A DNA stretch of 63,570 nt, counting the filler, from Platydemus manokwari (lineage: Eukaryota): NCBI GenBank assembly GCA_037951405.1. It is 5 parts of 5 records of this genome, joined end to end, with 100 filler letters (N's around TTAATTAATTAA, not from the genome) between each part and the next. Parts side by side here need not be neighbours in the genome. Positions count along the whole stretch, not along the records: positions 15,855 to 27,589 come from JBBMOY010494442.1; 4 more parts are not named here. One strand, given 5' to 3'. The translations under genes and the position numbers were made by a program. Below, one piece after another: positions 15,855 to 27,589 of this stretch (position 1 is the first letter of the stretch; every line of letters starts with the position of its first letter). Below the pieces are notes generated by a model, which searched no databases, was not told the DNA's origin, and saw only the letters and a program-made list of their open reading frames with translations.

Positions 15855-16630
15855 ACTTTGAATATTTAATATCGACTTAATTTCATTATTTATTGATTTT
15901 AATTTTATAAAATAAAATAAAATTTAAAATAAAAATTTATTCATTATCACTTTTTATTTGTTGTGATGTGAGTAGTTGACATTCGAATCAGTACCTTGAA
16001 ATTATATTAAGAAATATTGGACTGAAAACGTGTTTGGAATTGAAATGAATGATTTTAGTCGTAAATAATGTGTATCAAGTGACTGTGAGCCTTATTGTAG
16101 ACTTAATTTTGATTTCGGGTTGACTATCTGTCATAATTCTTTCGAAATTTAGAAAACATGAAAATCGATCAGAAATTGTTTGACAATCATTAGTTAGGGT
16201 TTGTAAAGAAATAATATTGAAATTGACAACGATTTGATCACAGGAATTCGCGAAAGGAATTGTTAGGAAATTAATTAAAAATGTGAGTAATTGGGATTCG
16301 AAACTGTGCCGTAAGATATTATTAATAAATAATTGAGTGACAATGTGATTAAAAATGATTTCTATTTTTGTCTACAATTTTATTTTCTACAAGCGCTATA
16401 ACTGGCATTACTTCGATTTAAAAATTTGATAAACATTTAGACGTAAAATAAAATTATAAATTGTCACTCAATTTGTTTTAATAAATATAAAAATGTAAAA
16501 CAGAATGTTTAAGGGGAACTATAAGCAGTTTGGTTTAACTATTTTACAACGAAATCAGCATGAAATGTTTTAACTTTTACAGTTGAGAGATTGTTTTAAA
16601 TTATTTAATAAGCGCATGTTTTTAAATTAT

Positions 16631-16670
16631 TAATAACAATAACAATAACAATAACAATAACAATAACAAT
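16631..16670. repeat. (AATAAC)n microsatellite, ~6 units
   Basis: Read directly. Confidence 0.9.
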
Positions 16671-17615
16671 ATCACTTTTCTATATGAATATAAATAATTT
16701 TTTGAATAAAAGATTTCTAAAATATCACAATTCGTTGATTTTATCAAAGCCATGAACAATTATTAAAATATCAGAACACTTTTATATCAATGTCAAGCGG
16801 TGGTTCGAATCCCAGATTGTTCACATTTTTATTGATTTTCCAACAATTCTTCTCACATATTGTTATGATAAAAAAAATTGTATCAACTAAAATATTACAC
16901 TCAAAGTCTCAGCAATAACAACAGCGAATCTTTTTACAATTCAGAAAATCACTTAAGACAAAATCAGCACCTGAAAATCAAATACAGAATGAAAAGTAAT
17001 GAAAAAGATTGATGATTAAAATCACACATAAGCTAGGCACTCGAGCTTCTTTTATAGTCCTATTGGTTGTGTATGTGATGTCACGGATCTTCGTTTTCCA
17101 TTTTGGTGAATTTGTTTGTGGATTGATTTACTTGAGTTTTTCCTTATAGCTCAAGTAATATTTCAGCTTGCTGCCATTTGGAGGTATGCACCTGTTGATT
17201 CGTAGCTTCTAAATATGATTTAACAGTAGAACGACTCTGATTGGTTAACATTGGTTTTCATCGGTTCTATGTGTATTAACCTTTTTCGGATTCTTTGGCT
17301 GGTTCTTGTGACTCTTCTCATTGATTGGTGATGTACTCAACAGAATTAATAAACCCGTAATATAGGATTGGGTGATTTTATCTTATATTTTTTGATAAGT
17401 CTTCAATTTCGAATTCTGATGGTCATCGAAGCAATCTAGCTAGTTTCATTGATCAAAAATAATGAACTACAAGTTAATTTAGATTTTCTTAAAAATTTTG
17501 AAAATAACATTTGATGTCCAGATGCAAATATTCTCAATCAATCAATAAATATCCTATTTCATATGATTTCTATTCAGTTATCGATTTTAAGTTTAGTATC
17601 TGTTCAGTGATAAAT

Positions 17616-17837
17616 AAAATGTAAAGATTTATGTTGGATATTTGTATTGCATGATTATTCACTTCCTAACACCAGAACCCGGGTTGGAGAACAACTGTTA
17701 TCGGATCCGGCATTACAGTTGTTCGCCGACAAGTGCTGGTCGATTAGGTTGCGATATAATCGTGTAACAATGCAAATATCCAATATTTCATAAATCCGGC
17801 TCTCACGTAGTTGAGTTACAGACGCGCCACGTCCAGC
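17616..17837 (-). ncRNA. 7SL/SRP-like Alu-domain RNA, copy A (~220 nt, rod-like body, shortened helix-3 loop)
   Basis: 5' GCTGGACGTGGCGCGTCTGTAACTCAACTACGTGAGAGC; nested stems GATTTATG/CATAAATC, TTGGATATTTG/CAAATATCCAA, GATTAT/ATAATC, CCTAA/TTAGG, ACCAG/CTGGT, AACAACTGT/ACAGTTGTT; ends TTTACATTTT. Confidence 0.75.
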
Positions 17838-17911
17838 CATTTTCCAATTCTATATTTATTAACTTCAATTAAATGATAATCGCGTCTACTTACAACTATT
17901 AGTAGATAATT
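17838..17911 (-). promoter_or_regulatory. Putative external Pol III promoter of copy A (upstream box -74..-48, TATA-like about -24..-17)
   Basis: AATTATCTACTAATAGTTGTAAGTAGA ... TAATAAAT at the same spacing in all four full copies. Confidence 0.6.
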
Positions 17912-18555
17912 TGAACATTATTTTTTATTAGATGCTATTGAACTATTTTTTCACAAATAAATAAAAATTTTATTTCAAATTATTTAATTTATGTCAAATT
18001 CAATCATTTTGTAAAAATAAAATCATTCTTAACTTTTTGTAAAGAACAAAATCGAAATCGACATTGATTTGATCACAGAATTTAATTAAAAATGCGAATA
18101 ACTGGGATTCGAATCTGTGACTTAAAATTATGTTAAGAAATATTGGACTGAAAATTTGAATTATCATCTGAAGCTGTGATGACAAGTTGTGATGACAAGA
18201 CTAGAGAAGCGATATACAATAATTGATAAAAAATATGAGCAGCCAAGAATACGAACCGGTTTTTCTTAAATGAATCAATACATTCATGCTAATGGATTGA
18301 ATGATTTGAGGTTATATTCTTTGATAAATCTACAATTTTGAATGCTGATGGTAATCGAAACAATCTGGCTAGATTCATTGAACAAAAATAATGAACTACA
18401 AGTTAATTTAGATTTTTATGATTATTTTATAAATAACATTTGGTGTTCATATTCTCAATAAATCAATAGATATCCTGTTCCATATGATTTCTATGCATTT
18501 ATCGATTTTAAGTTTAAATATATTTTCAAAAACATTTTTAGTGATAAACAAAATG

Positions 18556-18767
18556 AAAAGATTTATGTTGTGATGGAGCACATGAATATCCCTTCCTACA
18601 CCAGCCCCAGGTTCTAAACTTCTATCTTCTATCTTTGTAGATGTTTGTCTTTACCATGGTCTGTTTGTATAGCTTGTGGGATAATCATATAGCATTGTAT
18701 TTATTCGTCACTTCATAAATCCGGCTCTCAGGTAGTTGAGTTACAGACGCGCACCACCACGCCCAGC
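18556..18767 (-). ncRNA. 7SL/SRP-like Alu-domain RNA, copy B (~212 nt)
   Basis: 5' GCTGGGCGTGGTGGTGCGCGTCTGTAACTCAACTACCTGAGAGC; loop-loop complement GGTGGT/ACTACC; stems GATTTATG/CATAAATC, GTGA/TCAC, TATCCC/GGGATA, CTATAC/GTGTAG; ends TTTT. Confidence 0.8.
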
Positions 18768-18841
18768 CATTTTCCTATTCTATATTTATTAACTTCAATT
18801 GAATAATAATCGCTTCTACTTACAATTAAAAGTAGATAATT
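18768..18841 (-). promoter_or_regulatory. Putative external Pol III promoter of copy B
   Basis: AATTATCTACTTTTAATTGTAAGTAGA at -74..-48; TAATAAAT near -24. Confidence 0.6.
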
Positions 18842-19699
18842 TTAAATTTATTTTTAATTAAATGTTATTGTTCATAAATTATAGTGAAATCGATAAAATA
18901 GTTCACTTGTAAATTATTGCAGAATGAACTCTAAATTGATCATTGATTGACTCCAGTTCAAATCAATGGTTTTGTAAATCTTTAGAAATATGAGAAATGA
19001 ATTCGCGAGTTTTTCATTGAATATTATCAAGCATACAAATGTTATAAAATTACATTTGTTATCTGATTGATTTTCAAATTTGATATCTTTAACTTGAAAT
19101 AAATCAATAAATCAATATTAAAAATTTTATTAAATCAAATATAAAATTTATTGACTAAGAATCGTATTGAAGTAACGCCAAAAAATTTATTATTGATTAT
19201 TCAAAGAGGACATTTGCTCGTTTCCTTGTAAGATGATGCGTGAAAGCGTTACTGATGATGAGAAAATAATGTTAACTGGTACTAAAGGAAAAGATACAAT
19301 TCCAATAGTGGATCAGACACGTGAAAAGCTACCATAACAAGGTACAATAAAAGACACGAAAGAATGGAGGAGCATAAATAAATAATTGATTTGGATTGTG
19401 ATGACACGTGCTTATAATTTTGAATGATCCAATTAATTATCAAATCATCAGCTATTTCACATTTGATAAAATTAAAAATACTAAATAAAACTCGAGTGAT
19501 AATGGAACAATAGACCTAGAATCAATAAACACGATATTAATTGATTTATTGAATTATCATTAAATATTTGAGTGAGATTGGTGCAGTAATTCATCAGCCT
19601 TTATCAAGCGTAGGCGTTTTTCTGAAAAAGAGAAAAACAAAAAATACAATAAAATATGGCGTCTATCAAACAATTGGAAAATTATATCAAGCCATCATA

Positions 19700-20560
19700 A
19701 TCCATTCAATCAATTTCTTAATACAATTCTCTCCTTAAATAATTTTCTTTCATTTTCTATTATATCAGGATATCTTGAAACCAATTTCAAATATATACAA
19801 GAAAGAATTTGGTTGTTTATGATTTCAGTGTCTTTTCCTATTTGTTCTTCTTTTGGAATATTTACACATTCTTTATCAGCAACAATTATAAAAGGAACTG
19901 GTATTTGATGTTTATGTTTTAAAATTTTAACATGTTGTTGTAAGGGAAACTTTGTTCATTTCCATTATCTTTCATATTTGGCCGAATTATTTTTGGTTAT
20001 CTTTTTCCATCTTTTCCACATATTATTTGGTGATTTATAGAAACATTTTCTTTTACAAAGTAAGAACAACATTTATCACAGACATCTAATTTATCATTTT
20101 GTTTTCATTTATAATTCAATTCTCCACCCATAAATTGTTTAAAATTTTAATGAGAGCATGATGGGTTTTACCATTGTTTTTCTAAATGTAACAACTTGAT
20201 ATCTTGATTATATTCTTTATTTTTAGAAATATATTTTAGAAATAATTTATAGTTTTTTTTCCTCCTTTCTTCTTTCCTTCCTTAATTAGGCATTTTATTT
20301 CATCAGCATTGATTTTAAATTATTGTTCTTTTCATATATTTTTTATTTCACTAATGGGTATTGGAAATGTTACTCCATCTATATTTAATTAGTCAAAATG
20401 TTTTGTGAATTGATATAAATAATTCTCTACATCAACTATATTATTAGAGACAAAAGATAAAGATACATAATTACTTCAGGATAGTACATTTATGTTTGAA
20501 ATGTTTACTTTTATGCCCCTAATTCAAATATATTCTAACCACTGCCTTTAACCTTTAACA
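19700..20560 (-). mobile_element. Decayed Polinton/Maverick-type DNA polymerase B N-terminal region
   Basis: Broken minus frames LNIDGVTFPIPISEIK..EKNNNLKIN and KHQIPVPFIIVADKECV resemble the Polinton pPolB FP..I..FEK.N and VPFVIYADFE motifs. Confidence 0.65.
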
Positions 20561-21676
20561 AATCATCATCTAGTTTCTGTGGAAATTCATTGGTGGATTC
20601 TAATGATTGATCTGCATTCATTGGATCTTCTCTTATTTTCGATGTCTGATCTGAACTTAATGGTATTGTAATGCAATCATATTCATTTGTATTGTGATTT
20701 ATATTTTACAGGATAATCTTAACATTTATTTGTTCTATAATACTACTTCTTTGAATACAGAAAACTGAAGGGAAATTTCGGAAGGTTATCGATTTACGGA
20801 TATTGAAAAATTAGAAATATTTTTATTGGAACCGAATAGATGTTATTTTTGTTCAGAGAGTAATATTCGAGGAAATTGTTTCCAGAATATTTGTACACTC
20901 ATCAACTTTAATTGTAAAATATTCGAGGACGTTGCTCTCTAAAATCGGTAAATCAAAAACGTTTAGTGTAGTGAGTCTGTAACTGTTTATTGCGCCTCTT
21001 GTATTGTAACATAGGTCAGTAGTAGATAAAAATTGTTAGCGAACTGGTTATGTGATTTGTTGTTAACTTGAATATAAGATTGGACTCTTGATTGTGATAT
21101 TGCAATTTAAATAAACGATCGTAAAGTTGTTTTAAAAATAAATCTTACTATTCAACCGCCATCTTTTTGGAGTTAGATAGACAGAATCTAATGAGTATTT
21201 ATCGCGATCTACAGCAGGTAGACTCAATAAATTTGTGATATACTTTTTTCAACATGTTGGTGTAAAAGGAATTTGTACTGGAGCAAAACATGGAAGTGCT
21301 TTCTTGGTTAATAATTATGAAACAAAATCTATAAATATGTGTGTGTGTTGATAAAAGCTCTTATCCTTATTTAAGAAAGAAACGAAATTCTATATCTACA
21401 AAACCTAAATTATTAATATGTGAATTTAATAAACCACCAAATAATGGGTTTTCTATTTACTTAATTAATAAATTACTTAAAGATTTAAAGACTATATAAA
21501 ATTATTTAATTTATTGGTAATATATTTTCTAATAGATCATCAAAGAGTAATCTCCTGGAATTTATAATATTTAATAAAAGTTTATCCGATAATGAAAGTT
21601 CAGACATCAAAGATTTTTTTTACAGAAAATTATCGTGATTTGGAGTATTACTAAATTCTATATTAAATTAAATAAA

Positions 21677-22140
21677 ATGGAAGATCAAAAACTTTACCCT
21701 AACCTTGATAATTTTAATGATTCAATTGCCCCACCAGATTCTAAAACGATGAGTCCATCTTTTCTAAGCTATGAAAACGATAAGTGAAAAATAAATATTA
21801 ACATCTTTAAAATAGAAAAATTTTGGAATAAGAAAACAGTTTTAGAAGAATTATCAAATCATTATGATAAATAAAAAATTAAATGAAGTAAAGTAGATAA
21901 TGGTTTAAAGTATTCAATTATCATATATGGTTGTGTTTTAGCGGTTGTGTCAATTATTTTACCAACTCTTTCTGATGTTGGAATTTAACTTATAATTACT
22001 TTATATTGTGGAGTTGGAATTGGTTTATTCACGATAATAAAATCAATTATTGGGGAAACATTTCATATTGGTTTAAGCAGTAAAAAGAATAAAAATGTAT
22101 AAAGAAGTTTGCGAAGTGATAAAACATGATATTTCAATGC
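21677..22140 (+). mobile_element. Decayed Polinton-like small ORF (LYP.L / hydrophobic segments)
   Basis: MEDQKLYPNLDNFNDSIAPP followed by broken helical and hydrophobic segments; lies next to the pPolB remnant. Confidence 0.4.
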
Positions 22141-22502
22141 AATATTTCTTAATCTAATTTTAGGGCACAGTTTCGAATCCCAACGAATCAAATTTTTAAT
22201 TAATTTCTAATTTAAAACGAATTCCTGTGATCAAATCACTCTCAATTTCGATATTATTTCTTTTCAAAAAGTTAAGAATAATTGTCCTACATAAAAACAG
22301 TGCTACTAGAAGGATTTTGAGCAACAACCTATATATTACATCGGTTGTCAAAATATTTTAACTCGTAGATGTGGTTTGCTTCTTGGTTTATTATATTATT
22401 ATACATCAGTGCAACATCCTTGTTGGACTTAAGAAACGATTTCATATTAACTATTAAGTTTTCAAAAATTAAAATTCTTTTCGATTTGGAAATAATTTTT
22501 TC

Positions 22503-22858
22503 AAAAGATTTGTGTTGATTTGAATTGCATGATATCAGCTTAGACTTCGTTTTATATTTTTTTTCGGTTTTCCTCTTTCGATCTGACATAACTTTAGTCG
22601 ATCTACTCGATTGTTTTCCGTTTTTGGTTTATTGCTTTTTTTTGTATTTTTTCATTTTATAATTTTTTTTTTTTTTATTTTTGAATTTTTTTTTTTTTTT
22701 TGATTTTTTGATTTTTTTGATTTTATAATATTTTTTCAACTCAGTTCCAAACAGAATATCATGGTGAATATGATTTAACAATATATCACCCATAATTCAA
22801 ACTTCACAAATCCAGCTCTCAGGTAGTTGAGTTACAGACGCGCACCGCCACGTCCAGC
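22503..22858 (-). ncRNA. 7SL/SRP-like Alu-domain RNA, copy C (~356 nt, A-rich interior)
   Basis: 5' GCTGGACGTGGCGGTGCGCGTCTGTAACTCAACTACCTGAGAGC; stems GATTTGTG/CACAAATC, TTTGAATT/AATTCAAA, CATGATAT/ATATCATG; ~120-nt A-rich tract; first TTTT only at the 3' end. Confidence 0.75.
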
Positions 22859-22932
22859 TGAATTTTGTTTAGCTATTTATAAATTTCAACTAAGCGATGA
22901 TGTGTTCTATTGACAACTGAAAGTAGATAATT
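22859..22932 (-). promoter_or_regulatory. Putative external Pol III promoter of copy C
   Basis: AATTATCTACTTTCAGTTGTCAATAGA at -74..-48; TTATAAAT near -24. Confidence 0.6.
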
Positions 22933-23234
22933 TTCAATTGATTTTTATTACTTGACAAAAAAAATCACAACTAATACAATTCAAAATCACTAATTTAATA
23001 TAAATACACGCACGAATATTAGATGAATACTGAAGATTAAGTTGGATGTAAAAAACTACTAATAGAAGGATGATGTCGAATTATTGTATGTATATGAAAC
23101 ATCTTGAATACAATACGAATACATCGAGAATACTTTATATAAGCGCTGAGACACTCACATTTATATTGATTTTTAAATAATTCTTCTCACATATTTTTAT
23201 GAAAAAATAATTGGCCAAAGGTAAAAAAGGGTAC

Positions 23235-23587
23235 CAAAATAAATTTTTTAATTTGTTTAAGGGTATTGCGAAAATTTATATAGTTTATTTAATTATATTC
23301 TTTAAAAAACATTTATTTAATTTTTTATTAAAGTATTTAAGAAGAATTTTAGTTGTTTGAAATAAAATATTAAATAAACTAGATCTTAAAAATCTCCTAA
23401 AATTTGATTATTTGAAAAAATGAAAATAGAAGGTCGAATTGCAATTTATTGAAAATTAGCGAGGATCCTTTTTCTAACACACGAAGCAAATTGAGATGTC
23501 ATCTAAATTTTTACAATAACTCATAAAAATAACCAATGATATTATTAAACATATCTGTGATTAACTAACTCGATTTATAATTATAAA
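23235..23587. repeat. Dispersed ~360-bp AT-rich repeat, copy 2
   Basis: Colinear with 2680-3036. Confidence 0.8.
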
Positions 23588-24525
23588 AAATTAAATTTAA
23601 AAACTTAAATTTAAAAACATATAAAGTTAAGTTATAAAATTATTTCAGGCGCTAAATTTCATAATAACGAAAGTAGGTCAAAGGTCTAATTTTCTTAACT
23701 TAAGCCAAATAATTAATAATTTCGATATTTTTCATTTACCAAACATCATCAGTGATCGAAAAAGTATGTCTGCTGAAAAATAGATATTTTAAAAATTTAA
23801 AGATTAGTGAGAGAGAAGTAATTTGAATAATCATCTGAAGGTGTGATGACAAGATAAGTGAATCAATACACAGTAATTCATAAAAAATATGAGCAATCTA
23901 GAATACAAACCGGTTCCTCTACAATTTCTAATTTTGCTATCTTCATCGATTAAGAATAAAGTACTCTAGTTAATTCAGTATTTCTCAAGAATTTTATAAA
24001 TAACATTTCGTTACCAGATGAAAATATTTTTCATGGGCCAATGAATTTAATTCCTAATATACTTTAACTCATGCATTCAGAATGTCAATCAATTTATTTG
24101 TCAGTTGTTTGTTTTAATTACTGATATTCTGACTATAAAATGTTAGTTATTGACTGCGAAAAAATAAATATATCTAGAACTATAAATGAAATTATTCCAA
24201 ATATTTTTTGATGTTAAATTGATTTATCGGGTTTCACTTCTCAATCAATCCAAGTACTTTTGTTTTAATTATTAAATGATCGGTTTTTAAAAAAATTTTT
24301 CACAATGTGACAAAATTACGATAGCGAACGAATATTTAAAGGTGTTGTTAGAAGTGAGATGTGATTTATAATAGCTCTTTTACCTCTACTGATATACAAT
24401 ATAAATATAGTATACATATAATATCAATAAAATTTTATACTCATAGTATGTTTCAACGTACCATCAGTCTTACTCGTACTAGTACGTATGAGTAGATTTT
24501 ATATTTTAAAGTAAGATTTATAAAA

Positions 24526-24732
24526 ATGAATCCAAATAAAATTCGATACGATGTTTATACTGGTGATGAATTGTCAGTAATAGATATTAACATAAGATAT
24601 CCAGACCAAAAAAACCAATTAGAGTCTGCTTGTGATCCAAGACTAGGAGCAAGTAATGTAGGTTTATGTAATCTAAGTGAGAAAAAGGTTATTATTATAC
24701 ACCCTAAAATAATAAAAAAAGATACCCCCTAA
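24526..24732 (+). pseudogene. Fragment resembling the N-terminus of an RNA polymerase largest (beta-prime/RPB1-like) subunit
   Basis: KIRYDVYTGDELSVIDINIRYPDQKNQLESACDPRLGASNVGLC resembles the I.FG..S..E....I..P....DPRLG....C start of RPB1-family subunits; stops after 68 codons. Confidence 0.5.
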
Positions 24733-24816
24733 TAAGTGCATGTTTTCAAATTAAGAAACGATAACAAATAAGTTTTTATAAATTAAAATTCTATTCGATT
24801 TGGAAATAATTTATTC

Positions 24817-25106
24817 AAAAGATTTGTGTTGATTTGAATTGCTTGATATCAGCTTAGAATTTCGATACACTTTTAATATCTTTATGTGCTTTCAGCATGG
24901 TGGCAGAAAGTACATCTGTATTTTTTTCTATTCAATTCCAAGCTAAACATCATGGTGAATATGATTTAGCAATAGAACCCTCACGGCGCTAACCTTTCGT
25001 AAGTCATCATGGTGAATATGAACTATTATTTAATCACCCTTCATTCAAACTTCACAAATCCAGCTCTCAGGTAGTTGAGTTACAGACGCGCACCACCACG
25101 TCCAGC
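24817..25106 (-). ncRNA. 7SL/SRP-like Alu-domain RNA, copy D (~290 nt)
   Basis: 5' GCTGGACGTGGTGGTGCGCGTCTGTAACTCAACTACCTGAGAGC; stems GATTTGTG/CACAAATC, TTTGAAT/ATTCAAA, TAGCTTGGAATT/AATTCTAAGCTG, GATGTACTTT/AAAGTGTATC; ends TTTT. Confidence 0.8.
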
Positions 25107-25180
25107 TGATTTTTGTTTAGCAATTTATTAATTTCAGTTAAACCATAATGTGCTCTATTGACACCTGATATTAGATAATT
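25107..25180 (-). promoter_or_regulatory. Putative external Pol III promoter of copy D
   Basis: AATTATCTAATATCAGGTGTCAATAGA at -74..-48; TAATAAAT near -24. Confidence 0.6.
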
Positions 25181-26879
25181 TTTAATTGATTTTTATTAGA
25201 TGACCAATTTGAAAAAAACTATCCTTCTCAGTTCACCATTGATACACCAGAAATAAGAAAATCGATTATATCAATGTAGACCTTGGATGTTGGAACAATG
25301 TTTTATTATCATGAGATTGAAATATAATTATTCACTAGATAAGAAGTTTTGATTTTACAAATATTTCTGTGCACTTAAACGACAGAGGAGTAAAATCAAT
25401 TTTTTAACAGCTTTTCAATCAAAACCGATAAATAAGAGGAATAAGAGGATGTTGAGGTAAATAACTAATGATCTTACCACTATTAATGCTTACTGATCCT
25501 CTTATTGGTGTTGGATTGAAAAATCTTCTCAAAATAAAATCAATATCAAAGTGATCTTTCAGTAATTTACTGGGTATATGACTTTCGAAGATTTGAGCAA
25601 TTTGACTGGCTTGATCTCTTACGCAACTGAATTTTGTTGCTAGTGGTTTAATAATGAGTAAGTCTACTGATGTTGTGAGCCTATTTATATGGTTGTTTAT
25701 TTGAGTGCAACTTCCTTATCAAATAGACGTATTATTCAAATGTACATTATGTGAATAATTCACATTATCAGGTTCAGGAGTACAATTACAAGAGTTTCGA
25801 GTTTAGTTCAAACTTGCCTTGAGGTTCAGCTCAAGCGTAACAGCAAAATATTAGGTGCTCAAACAAGTAATGACAGTTATCGTCCATAAGATCATCACAT
25901 TTTATCCAAGTTCAAATTGGAAGATAAATTGATTATTTCTTTGTAAGAGAGACTCATACTGACAAGATATAGAGTGTTTTAAAGCTTGTTATGATTTATA
26001 TAACAAAATCTATTGTACAAGGTTGCACTAAAATCTGTGATTGGAGAAACCATTTCAGTGAGTACGATAGATGAGCAATTAACAGTTCTTATCAAAATCG
26101 TTACAATCCAATTGTTATCAAATGCAATTGTCTAAAATGACAAACCCAGTGACGTGAGACTTGTAGTAAAAAACCGTTCATTAATATACCCAGCAAATGA
26201 AGCGTCTTGTCAAGGGCTTCACTATATGGACTTGGATGTAAATTGTTTATTTACAAAGTGTGAGACATTGCAATTCCAATATTTCGTAACATAATCATAA
26301 GGCACAGATTCGAATCTCAAACTACCCACATTTTTAAAATATTGGAAATTAGATGTTAATATTATTTTCATTATCTATATCTCCAAGAATTAAACTCTTA
26401 AAATTAGGTGTTAATGGAATATTATTTGCATCAGCTGAATAAGCATTATTATCGAATTCAATAATTAAATATTGAATTACATTGATTTTCATAAATAAGA
26501 AATCCATACCATTTAAAATCTTTAATTCGAAAGATAATATGTATGGACTTGAGTATGATATTTCCCAATCGAATTTTAATAAATTAGGATTTGCATATGC
26601 AGATTTTGGTTTATTTTCTTGAATATTTTTCTTTGAATTTACATTATTTATATTTTCTTGTTTATTTTTAATACCTTTTAAATTTTAATTTCCCTCTTCT
26701 ATTGCTAATTGTGGTTTTTACTGATTTCAAAAAGATGTAGGAAATAAGACGATAGCTTGATTTAACAAAATTTTTGAATATTGTTGTTCTTCAGCTTTAC
26801 TTACTTTTATTGATGTCAAAACCATTTATTCATAGCCATTCTTTAAAACTAAATCGATTTAATTTTTCAGTTACAACAT

Positions 26880-27589
26880 AACAATTGAAATGAATGATTA
26901 TAATCTTAAACAATAATGTGTAAATAATGTGTATCAAGTGAATGTGAGACTTATTGTAGTTTAAACTACGACTTCGGGTTAATTATCTGTCATAATTCTT
27001 TCTAAATATGAAAATATGAATCTCGATCAGAAATTGTTTGACAATCATTTGTAAAGAAATAATATCGAAATCGACATTGATTTAATCACAGAAATTCGTG
27101 AAAGGAATTGTTAGGAAATTAACTAAAAATGTGATTAGTTGGGATTCGAACCTGTGACTTAGAATAATATTAAGAAATATTGGACTGAAAATGTGAATGG
27201 TCATCTGAAGCTGTGATGGCAAGACTAGAGAAGCGATATACAGTTATTTATAAAAATTATTGGTAGCCAAGAATACGAACCAGTTCCTCTTAAACGAATC
27301 AATACATTCATGTTAATAGATTGAGTTAGTTGAGCATATTTTATTTGATAAGTCTACAATTTTGAATGCTGATGGTCATCGAAGTAATCTAGCTAGATTC
27401 ATTGATCAAAAATAATGAACTACAAGTTAATTTAGATTTTCTTAAAAATTTTGAAAATAACATTTGGTGTGCAGATACAAATATTCTCAATCAATCAATA
27501 AATATCCTGTTCCATATGATTTCTATTCAGTTATCGATTTTAAGTTTAGTATCTGTTCAGTGATAAATAAAATGTAAAGATTTATGTTG
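26880..27589. repeat. Repeat module forming the 3' flank of A/B/E-type 7SL-like genes; contains a B-box
   Basis: Homologous pieces at ~15970-16320, 17370-17636, 18000-18570, 23825-24030 and inverted at 22140-22290; GGTTCGAATCCC on the minus strand at 27141-27152. Confidence 0.85.
27569..27589 (-). ncRNA. 3' end of a fifth 7SL-like copy (E), cut by the assembly gap
   Basis: CAACATAAATCTTTACATTTT and its flank are nearly identical to the 3' end of copy A. Confidence 0.65.

Follow-up and report, generated by a model that had tools for sequence, protein, structure and literature searches.

A small, locally duplicated family of predicted Pol III genes for Alu-domain RNAs is, at a rough probability of 0.55, our reading of a cluster in Platydemus manokwari. 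Its four complete units, which descend from the SRP (7SL) RNA gene, retain the Alu 5′ domain and have lost the S domain. The cluster lies in an 11.7-kb piece (JBBMOY010494442.1) of the window, the whole 63,570-nt stretch of DNA that was analysed. It is a candidate analogue of rodent 4.5SH and primate BC200, and we know of no stand-alone Alu-type RNAs reported previously outside vertebrates.

The initial annotation had placed four co-oriented minus-strand copies here, each closing with a long helix and ending at its first TTTT, together with the 3′ end of a fifth copy at the edge of the piece. Coordinates, strand, and lengths proved exact (Table 1), and in copies A–D the T-run follows the closing helix immediately. 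The absence of an internal TTTT from the bodies is weakly informative, with a joint probability of ~0.03 given each gene's own T-poor composition (22–29% T in the RNA strand vs 36% in the background). At the edge of the piece, 21 nt (27589–27569) match the 3′ end of A (17636–17616) with 100% identity and the next 300 nt (27289–27588) are 90% identical to the downstream flank of A (17336–17635); these 21 nt are therefore taken to be a fifth, edge-cut copy, E. Copy D contains a 57-nt internal duplication or insert flanked by a 15-nt direct repeat (25020–25006 and 24963–24949). The genome is very AT-rich, and the surroundings of the cluster are rich in repeats and TEs, without intact ORFs.

Table 1. 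Positions of the 7SL-derived units and their parts, counted along the window.
Feature	Position	Strand	Description
Copy A	17616..17837	(-)	222 nt; Alu 5′ domain with 5-nt L2 deletion, ~75-bp imperfect rod, T-run
Copy B	18556..18767	(-)	212 nt; Alu 5′ domain intact, A-rich internal loops in the rod, T-run
Copy C	22503..22858	(-)	356 nt; Alu 5′ domain (L2 = GGCGGU), helix-5-like rod, ~190-nt A-rich apical insert
Copy D	24817..25106	(-)	290 nt; intact Alu 5′ domain, branched rod
Copy E (A-type, 3′ end only)	27569..27589	(-)	truncated by the edge of the piece
Alu 5′ domain, reference copy B	18721..18767	(-)	47 nt
Alu 5′ domain, equivalents	A 17796-17837; C 22812-22858; D 25060-25106	(-)	
PSE-like upstream motif	A 17901..17913; B 18831-18843; C 22922-22934; D 25170-25182	(-)	-76..-64
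TATA-like box	A 17853..17862; B 18783-18792; C 22874-22883; D 25122-25131 (one mismatch)	(-)	-25..-16
Downstream flank co-duplicated with A/B/E-type genes	17336..17635; other copies 18265-18564, 27289-27588	(-)	

The Alu 5′ domain of copy B comprises helix 2 (GCU/AGC), helix 3, loop L2 (GGUGGU), the U-turn UGUAA (bearing the triad G4/U23/G24), helix 4 (CUCA/UGAG), and loop L1.2 (ACUACC). That each copy starts with a near-invariant SRP Alu 5′ fold, as had been claimed, is borne out by identity at 44–46 of 47 positions among B, C, and D; copy A differs from the others by the L2 deletion and one change in L1.2. The complementarity of L2 to L1.2 described earlier, complete in B and D and interrupted by a single mismatch in C, is likewise present, and one loop–loop pair departs on both sides from the metazoan consensus, with U and A in place of C (L2) and G (L1.2). 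The U-turn triad, defined as an SRP9/14-binding determinant in PMC12265939, is found in B, C, and D; copy A has it at the equivalent positions. MFE folds computed independently for all four copies give the same Alu 5′ domain and one long 5′–3′ closing helix.

The best-scoring Rfam family or SRP model for the copies is the metazoan one, RF00017 (Metazoa_SRP). It matches copy B with 40.1 bits (E = 1e-7) and copy D with 42.7 bits (E = 2e-8; nt 1–98 only), both below its gathering score of 70, and returned no match for copies A and C; copy A has an R1 covariance-model match of 79.6 bits. In these alignments, nt 1–44 of both B and D fall on helices 2–4 and on the UGUAA turn with a posterior probability of ~1, and 124–209 S-domain positions are deleted, the score coming from the Alu domain. 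Together with the folds, the alignment supports the proposed descent from 7SL with the Alu 5′ domain kept.

Upstream, a PSE-like motif, AAAATTATCTACT, lies at an equal distance from all four starts with 0–1 mismatch. The block at −33..−14, which includes the TATA-like box, is identical at 20/20 positions between A and B. These motifs and the T-run suggest Pol III transcription. The distance from the TATA-like box to the proposed start is a few nucleotides shorter than in typical type-3 promoters, which counts against this reading.

The main rival is that the units are decaying, non-functional 7SL pseudogenes. A 7SL gene would have been segmentally duplicated together with its promoter, deletions, insertions, and expanding microsatellites would have removed the S domain, and the Alu ends would look conserved because they were copied recently or were converted by neighbouring functional 7SL genes. 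We consider this account unlikely, though a serious one. It fits interiors that are unconstrained in sequence and length, with an A-rich low-complexity insert in C and the internal duplication in D, and it fits the repeat- and TE-rich surroundings; among RNA runs, none contained the locus. The interior is also more diverged between A and B than the flank (61% vs 80% identity, p = 4e-5), which could mean no constraint plus mutation-prone hairpins. Since copy A of the window has a damaged L2 loop, in addition to the altered L1.2, and mismatches in its rod, at least this copy may be decaying.

Contigs from an independent DNA run, X1, were compared with the piece. One contig matches 18387–18753 (copy B) exactly, and another joins 22541 to 22730 in copy C, omitting the A-rich part. 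The X1 depth over copy A belongs entirely to a 97%-identical version, in which a 5-nt insertion restores the normal L2 loop and three of the eight substitutions convert rod mismatches to pairs (MFE −86 vs −74), an observation in favour of the family reading.

The pseudogene account is harder to reconcile with the comparison of the two subfamilies, A/B and C/D. Between them, the Alu domain is identical at 44–45 of 47 positions (94–96%), nt 48–56 at 8/9, the PSE-like motif at 12–13/13, and the −33..−14 block at 15/20, whereas the adjoining spacers are at chance level (4–5/13 at −13..−1; 5/14 at +57..+70). For B vs D, the difference between conserved islands and spacers has a Fisher p of 3e-8. 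Separate islands (−76..−64, −33..−14, and +1..+56) split by spacers of chance identity would not arise from decay or a single conversion tract. Between C and D, the gene ends remain 83–98% identical, while the flanks have reached saturation upstream of −100 and more than 50 nt past the gene end. One pair of the 9-bp helix-5 base shows a compensatory change, being A-U in A/B (GGAUUUAUG / CAUAAAUC) and G-C in C/D (GGAUUUGUG / CACAAAUC). Searches found no relatives from other species, so the covariation evidence comes from four paralogs only. The TTTT-free RNA strand is kept in 4/4 bodies, and 4/4 interiors still form closing rods better than shuffled sequences do, both points against pseudogenes. 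Promoter motifs and Alu domain are thus conserved as islands in two subfamilies that cannot otherwise be aligned, which speaks for constraint and against plain decay; with the spacers between them randomised, selection explains the islands better than recent copying or a gene-conversion tract does. Conversion from a canonical 7SL gene may nevertheless maintain the Alu domain.

The middles are highly variable, as had been noted: they differ in sequence and length (~100 to ~250 nt), are mutually unalignable or barely alignable, and are homologous neither to one another nor to the S domain. The initial annotation had further called them structured cargo. This is borne out in part. When each interior is folded by itself, all four exceed their dinucleotide-shuffled versions in stability (z = −5.2, −3.1, −2.3, and −3.4), and the full-length copies have z scores of −5.9 (A, MFE −74.3), −2.7 (B), −3.6 (C), and −3.0 (D), but position-by-position covariation of the interiors among the four paralogs did not exceed slid-partner controls. 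Such rods could instead make the units Pol III-driven long-hairpin precursors, processed to small RNAs, with the Alu end serving only as promoter, leader, or stabiliser. The near-perfect ~75-bp duplex of the A-type rod, with perfect stems of 16–17 bp and 7 bp in its X1 version, and the arm-to-arm pairing maintained in fast-evolving interiors are in keeping with this idea, which is improbable given that the rods of B and C are broken by large A-rich loops and that it leaves unexplained the strict conservation of every SRP9/14 determinant in the Alu domain.

The absence of an intact helix 8 from any copy, claimed at the outset, is confirmed by the deleted S-domain columns and by a search for the AGG-N3-GNRA-N3-AGCA motif, which is absent from every copy and from the whole piece even with two mismatches allowed. 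This result bears on whether the units are simply the ordinary SRP RNA genes of this organism, with a non-canonical S domain that neither motif searches nor the Rfam models recognise. The units do resemble a working 7SL gene in promoter, Alu domain, closing helix, and terminator, and non-canonical SRP RNAs such as that of Cryptococcus reportedly escaped earlier computational searches (PMC4605306). The piece shows no canonical 7SL gene, but 11.7 kb of genome is too little for this absence to be informative. Against this explanation, which is very improbable, the rods of A and B are unbranched and lack a helix-6/helix-8 junction, and the four middles, being unalignable and of such different lengths, cannot all present one SRP54/SRP19 site.

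Copies A and B are arranged as a tandem unit of ~930 bp (repeat family D1, start-to-start spacing 929–930) with flanks 74–86% identical. Because the promoter (upstream 100 nt) and as much as 500 nt of the downstream flank were copied with the gene body, the family arose by DNA duplication, as first proposed. Retroposed SINEs were rejected for want of an A-tail and for the low copy number. A 7SL-derived, SINE1-like SINE or other non-autonomous element with a 7SL head would account for a head without S domain (the SINE1 architecture; PMC7245038), the A-rich tract of C, and the many repeats of the region, yet it is scarcely credible in view of the fixed-position motifs copied with the body, the ending of the copies in a T-run next to the closing helix and not in an A-tail or a LINE-derived tail, the lack of visible target-site duplications at unit borders, the X1 contig depth, which summed across the genes amounts to only a few single-copy equivalents, and the tandem arrangement of A and B.

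In the preferred reading, that of a family of Alu-domain RNA genes, each gene keeps its upstream promoter, a complete Alu 5′ domain, an oligo-T terminator, and a helix-5 base joining the 5′ and 3′ ends. A helix-5-like rod that changes fast between copies has taken the place of the S domain, that is, of helices 6 and 8 with the SRP19 and SRP54 sites. With the S domain lost, the RNAs would therefore be unable to act as SRP RNA in signal-sequence recognition. By analogy with mammalian scAlu, BC200, and Alu RNPs, they may act through the Alu module by binding SRP9/14, and would either titrate this dimer or recruit it to ribosomes, possibly affecting translation. The variable rod may be a spacer or a partner-specific part.

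Rodent 4.5SH genes were amplified as DNA units of gene plus flanks, in tandem repeats, and the copies here were likewise duplicated together with their flanks. 4.5SH is also a small RNA gene derived from 7SL without the S domain and a Pol III gene with an upstream TATA-like box and a T-run terminator (PMC10137851), Pol III use being predicted here. It differs in being ~94 nt long, in having arisen via the B1 SINE, and in its hundreds of near-identical units that rely on internal A and B boxes, whereas the copies here are a handful, of 212–356 nt, with the 7SL Alu 5′ domain in full, helix 5 as closing helix, a PSE-like motif upstream, and strongly divergent interiors, and nothing points to a SINE intermediate. 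An Alu domain without the S domain is also found in primate BC200 and scAlu/Alu RNAs, along with the G/U/G U-turn triad and loop–loop complementarity needed by SRP9/14 (PMC12265939), and BC200 has an A-rich tract 3′ of the Alu part, as in copy C; Alu RNPs reportedly regulate translation via SRP9/14 (PMC4357698). BC200 and Alu are unlike the copies in their retroposition origin and internal promoters, and the A-rich region of BC200 is followed by a unique single-stranded tail, whereas here, as in 7SL proper, the 3′ end is base-paired to the 5′ part. Metazoan SRP RNA (RF00017) shares the Alu 5′ domain, the helix-5 base closing both ends, the 3′ oligo-U, and the gene-external promoter, but the copies lack helices 6 and 8 and score at most 40–43 bits against 70. 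SINE1 elements (Alu, B1, hagfish SINE1-1_EBu, and the shrew-mole dimeric SINE) likewise underwent an independent central 7SL deletion with the Alu domain kept (PMC7245038; PMC13023118), and 7SL-derived SINEs are reported in the surveyed literature from mammals and hagfish only; the copies here differ from them in lacking a retroposition signature, in their low copy number, and in the co-duplication of promoter and flanks.

The genes considered here lie in a single piece of the window (15855–27589, JBBMOY010494442.1), which is ~26% G+C and rich in dispersed repeats. Long open reading frames are absent from this piece, and alternative genetic codes likewise yield no convincing ones. Four 7SL-like units, A–D, are complete, and in all of them the first TTTT marks the 3′ end. 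A fifth, A-type copy (E) is cut by the piece edge, as indicated by the terminal 21 nt, which are identical to the 3′ end of A, and by the 300 nt downstream of them, which match the downstream flank of A at 90%. A covariance model of nucleotides 1–60 of A–D scores the four copies at 80–93 bits and finds no further degenerate copy in the piece. The initial annotation had placed the four units at exactly these coordinates on the minus strand, and its assertions that each ends at the first TTTT and that the 3′ end of a fifth copy abuts the gap are equally correct.

Features of the piece, in window coordinates
Feature	Position	Strand	Remark
Copy A	17837-17616	minus	222 nt
Copy B	18767-18556	minus	212 nt
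Copy C	22858-22503	minus	356 nt
Copy D	25106-24817	minus	290 nt
Copy E, 3′ end only	27589-27569	minus	last 21 nt of the piece
TTCGAATCCC core	27141-27150, 18104-18113, 16293-16302	minus
TTCGAATCCC core	16804-16813, 22172-22181	plus
Degenerate TTCGAATCCC core	26307-26316
Degraded ORF pieces	19713-20104	minus	frameshifts and stops
Very high-copy repeat	21364-22099
Extra DNA in downstream flank of A	16376-17335		~960 bp
(TGTTAT)6 microsatellite	16633-16668		inside the extra flank DNA of A
GC-richer, TTTT-free stretch	17021-17458	minus	437 nt
D6 repeat	18184-18271, 23838-23925, 27208-27295	plus	88 bp
Weak snoR27-like matches	17375-17458, 27343-27411	minus	near D6

At curated gathering thresholds, Rfam gives no match anywhere in the piece. 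With reporting by E-value, the metazoan SRP RNA model (RF00017, gathering score 70 bits) is the best match for the units, scoring 42.7 bits for D (E = 2e-8) and 40.1 bits for B (E = 1e-7), both below gathering; A, which has a 5-nt deletion in loop L2, and C, which has a long insert, give no SRP match, searches of short stretches included. This search, proposed in the initial annotation, bears out the relationship for B and D, at sub-threshold scores, and not for A and C. The scores derive from nucleotides 1–44 plus the base of helix 5: in B and D, nucleotides 1–44 align to helices 2, 3, and 4 and the UGUAA U-turn with posterior probability of ~1. Independent minimum free energy (MFE) folds of all four copies place the Alu 5′ domain first, followed by one long helix in which the region after nucleotide 46 pairs with the 3′ end (z-scores of −5.9, −2.7, −3.6, and −3.0 for A–D). 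In every copy, helix 5 joins the 5′ and 3′ ends by 9 bp, with the T-run (3′ oligo-U) directly after it. The Alu 5′ fold that had been proposed by eye is therefore recovered both by the RF00017 alignment and by four concordant MFE folds.

The nucleotides critical for the Alu fold and for SRP9/14 association in 7SL, G4, U23, and G24 (PMC12265939), occur in B, C, and D, and A has them at equivalent positions. Loop L2 (GGUGGU) is complementary to loop L1.2 (ACUACC); in the window copy of A, L2 is shortened. Relative to the metazoan consensus, C has been replaced by U in L2 together with G by A in L1.2, a joint change that, on our understanding of the Alu crystal structure, would keep one loop–loop pair.

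The S domain, which comprises helices 6 and 8, is missing from the units. The RF00017 alignments delete 124–209 model positions, which make up this domain. In helix 8, the SRP54 site, AGG and AGCA loops lie on either side of a GNAR/GNRA tetraloop; the corresponding motif AGG-N3-GNRA-N3-AGCA is found in none of the copies, in line with the lack of an intact helix 8 stated in the initial annotation, and with two mismatches allowed it matches only outside the genes. The helix 6 hairpin and three-way junction on helix 5 that form the SRP19 site are also absent from A and B, which fold as unbranched rods, and the fold of D has branches that cannot be aligned to the RF00017 model.

Upstream of the Alu domain, the element AAAATTATCTACT occupies positions −76 to −64 in all four copies with 0–1 mismatch, and a TATA-like box, TT(A/T)ATAAAT(A/T), lies at −25 to −16 in A–D; this arrangement is that of a predicted Pol III promoter of the upstream, type-3-like kind. 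The RNA strand is low in T, with 22–29% T in the genes versus 36% on the strand overall. Given the genes' own composition, the joint probability that TTTT is absent from the gene bodies until their ends is ~0.03, so that the TTTT-free length is weakly significant as evidence. As judged from sequence, the units are discrete putative genes, with Pol III signals, for an RNA of Alu type that lacks the S domain, and the most economical interpretation is a small family of putative Pol III genes derived from a 7SL gene. Such genes would have kept the parts needed for transcription and for an Alu ribonucleoprotein and would have lost those for signal recognition.

The interiors, called highly variable in the initial annotation, do span about 100 to 250 nt in A–D, differ in sequence, and cannot be aligned between the A/B(/E) and C/D subfamilies. 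That of C has a ~190-nt A-rich insert, that of D a 57-nt duplication or insert between 15-nt direct repeats, and that of A a near-perfect hairpin rich in G+C. With the Alu domain and the helix 5 base removed, the interiors are more stable than dinucleotide shuffles (z = −5.2, −3.1, −2.3, and −3.4 for A–D), and each alone again folds into the closing, helix 5-like rod. When a fold is projected onto the closest paralog, 52–63% of positions pair versus 29–51% with slid partners; compensatory double changes number 2–5, no excess over slid controls among these few sequences, so that the counts speak neither for nor against pair-by-pair covariation. Rod formation is, in a general sense, kept across the copies. 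Between the tandem neighbors A and B, the interior is 61% identical and the 300 nt downstream are 80% identical (Fisher p = 4e-5). That the interior, the predicted transcribed but sequence-unconstrained part, outpaces its flanks is a measurable oddity, for which transcription-associated mutation, hairpin-driven change, interior exchange between paralogs, and diversifying selection are possible causes.

Conservation between the two subfamilies is confined to islands. In blocks counted from the gene start, identity is about half at −100 to −77, 12–13/13 at −76 to −64, about 60% at −63 to −34, 15/20 at −33 to −14, 4–5/13 at −13 to −1, 44–45/47 at +1 to +47, 8/9 at +48 to +56, and 5/14 at +57 to +70, beyond which the sequence into the genes is unalignable. 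The contrast of the Alu block with its immediate neighbors is significant in the comparison of B with D (Fisher p = 3e-8). The base of helix 5 carries one compensatory change, A-U in A/B and G-C in C/D. Between C and D, identity is at chance level beyond −100 and past ~+50 after the terminator, and the gene ends are 83–98% identical. Near-identity islands separated by randomized spacers point to selection on the promoter elements and the RNA domain; contiguous identity would instead be expected from recent copying or from one tract of gene conversion. The same island pattern argues against the main and still plausible rival interpretation, in which the units are decaying 7SL pseudogenes, as do the compensatory pair in the helix 5 base and the maintained rods. 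That the units are ordinary, if odd, SRP RNA genes is unlikely, since four non-homologous middles cannot all carry an SRP54 site, even though non-canonical SRP RNAs that went undetected have a precedent (PMC4605306).

Among public sequencing runs, none from RNA covers the locus; one from DNA does, and this independent sample, used as contigs only (X1), was compared with the genes. One exact contig spans most of B. Over A (window 17500–17837), the entire contig depth comes from a version that is 97% identical to the window copy and carries eight substitutions and a 5-nt insertion after 17824, changes that restore a normal L2 (GGCGGU, as in C) and convert three rod mismatches into pairs, with an MFE of −86 kcal/mol versus −74 kcal/mol in the window copy. 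The normal L2 of this version indicates that the damaged L2 in the window reflects allelic variation, strain variation, or an assembly error and is not a feature of the family. Another contig joins 22541 to 22730 and represents a C-like copy or allele without the 188-nt A-rich middle, so that middle length varies either as a polymorphism or from one further paralog to another. Summed contig depth, a rough measure, is 43–71 over the genes versus 12–31 for exact single contigs, which suggests that the genome holds a handful of gene copies rather than a SINE-like number.

Other features of the piece were recorded alongside. A dispersed repeat of ~100–300 bp (D4, D5, and D7) has a tRNA T-arm/B-box-like core, TTCGAATCCC, and a T-run follows some of its copies; three copies belong to the flank that was duplicated along with genes A, B, and E. 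Despite the T-arm-like motifs, ARAGORN and Rfam detect no tRNA at these repeats or elsewhere in the piece, and the repeat may be a tRNA-derived SINE or a MITE relic. The D6 repeat has a GUGAUGA C-box-like motif and gives only weak, sub-threshold matches to snoRNA models (GlsR5, 17.5 bits). The downstream flank of A has extra DNA relative to that of E, and the GC-richer stretch on the minus strand, which contains CCAAT boxes together with the motif TATAAAAG, may be a solo LTR or a Pol II promoter. The very high-copy repeat has a summed depth of ~14,400 in X1, compared with 12–31 for unique contigs. The degraded ORF encodes a C..C...H...C motif followed by VPFIIVADKEC, which we take to resemble the N-terminus of Maverick/polinton-type protein-primed DNA polymerases; it has no Pfam match, and its only Atlas matches are eukaryotic hypothetical proteins. 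A weak taxonomic hint from these matches and the best SRP fit being the metazoan model both point to an animal host.

Searches for relatives with two Alu-domain patterns against metagenome, prokaryote-genome, and viral contigs returned nothing or chance matches. Three candidates (L001, L002, and L004) were rejected as GC-rich bacterial or viral coding DNA. A fourth, the 1.2-kb metagenome contig Ga0182190_1010958 (L003:814-834), has a 21-mer in common with helix 3 and the U-turn and is vaguely Alu-like there; Rfam detects nothing SRP-like in it, so that it is probably unrelated.

By analogy with scAlu, Alu, and BC200 (PMC4357698, PMC12265939, PMC10351891), we infer that the RNAs might act through SRP9/14 and the ribosome. 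A fuller and rather improbable reading, to which we assign a probability of roughly 15%, is that of a modular, non-vertebrate Pol III RNA family in which the Alu domain would serve as a constant “handle” that binds SRP9/14 and docks at the ribosomal factor site, while the fused rods diversify rapidly to give each paralog its own partner or target. The interiors would then outpace non-genic DNA through diversifying selection or cassette swaps, and the RNAs would be programmable translation regulators independent of mammalian Alu, BC200, and 4.5SH. Quite apart from this reading, such a gene family outside vertebrates would show that the Alu domain has repeatedly been put to use as an independent module, and it would offer a natural system in which the roles of the Alu domain and of SRP9/14 in arresting elongation or controlling translation can be studied separately from signal recognition.

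In the literature searched, S-domain-less 7SL-derived RNAs are described from mammals and hagfish only, by retroposition, and 7SL-derived SINEs are stated to be restricted to Euarchontoglires, hagfish, and one additional mammal (PMC7245038, PMC13023118); the known stand-alone derivatives 4.5SH and BC200 are mammalian (PMC10137851). In our literature search, reports of such genes were confined to vertebrates, and the unit sequence itself yielded nothing. On condition that it is expressed, the gene family outside vertebrates would differ from these in being made by DNA duplication, in retaining the upstream promoter and the closing helix of 7SL, and in having variable middles. Its spread is by DNA duplication, as the initial annotation had held in preference to retroposition. 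The duplicated DNA takes in, besides the genes, ~100 nt of upstream and 50 to ~500 nt of downstream sequence, and A and B form ~930-bp tandem units whose downstream 300–500 nt are common to E. The copies in the piece end in a T-run and show no A-tail, LINE-like tail, or target-site duplications, and the piece holds no sign of a SINE ancestor such as B1 or an Alu monomer. In having a 7SL-derived head without an S domain, the units resemble the 7SL-derived SINEs (SINE1). Retroposed SINE1 copies, by contrast, sit between unrelated flanks, show target-site duplications, and carry a 3′ tail that is A-rich or derived from a LINE, and it is in their flanks and tail that the units described here differ from them.
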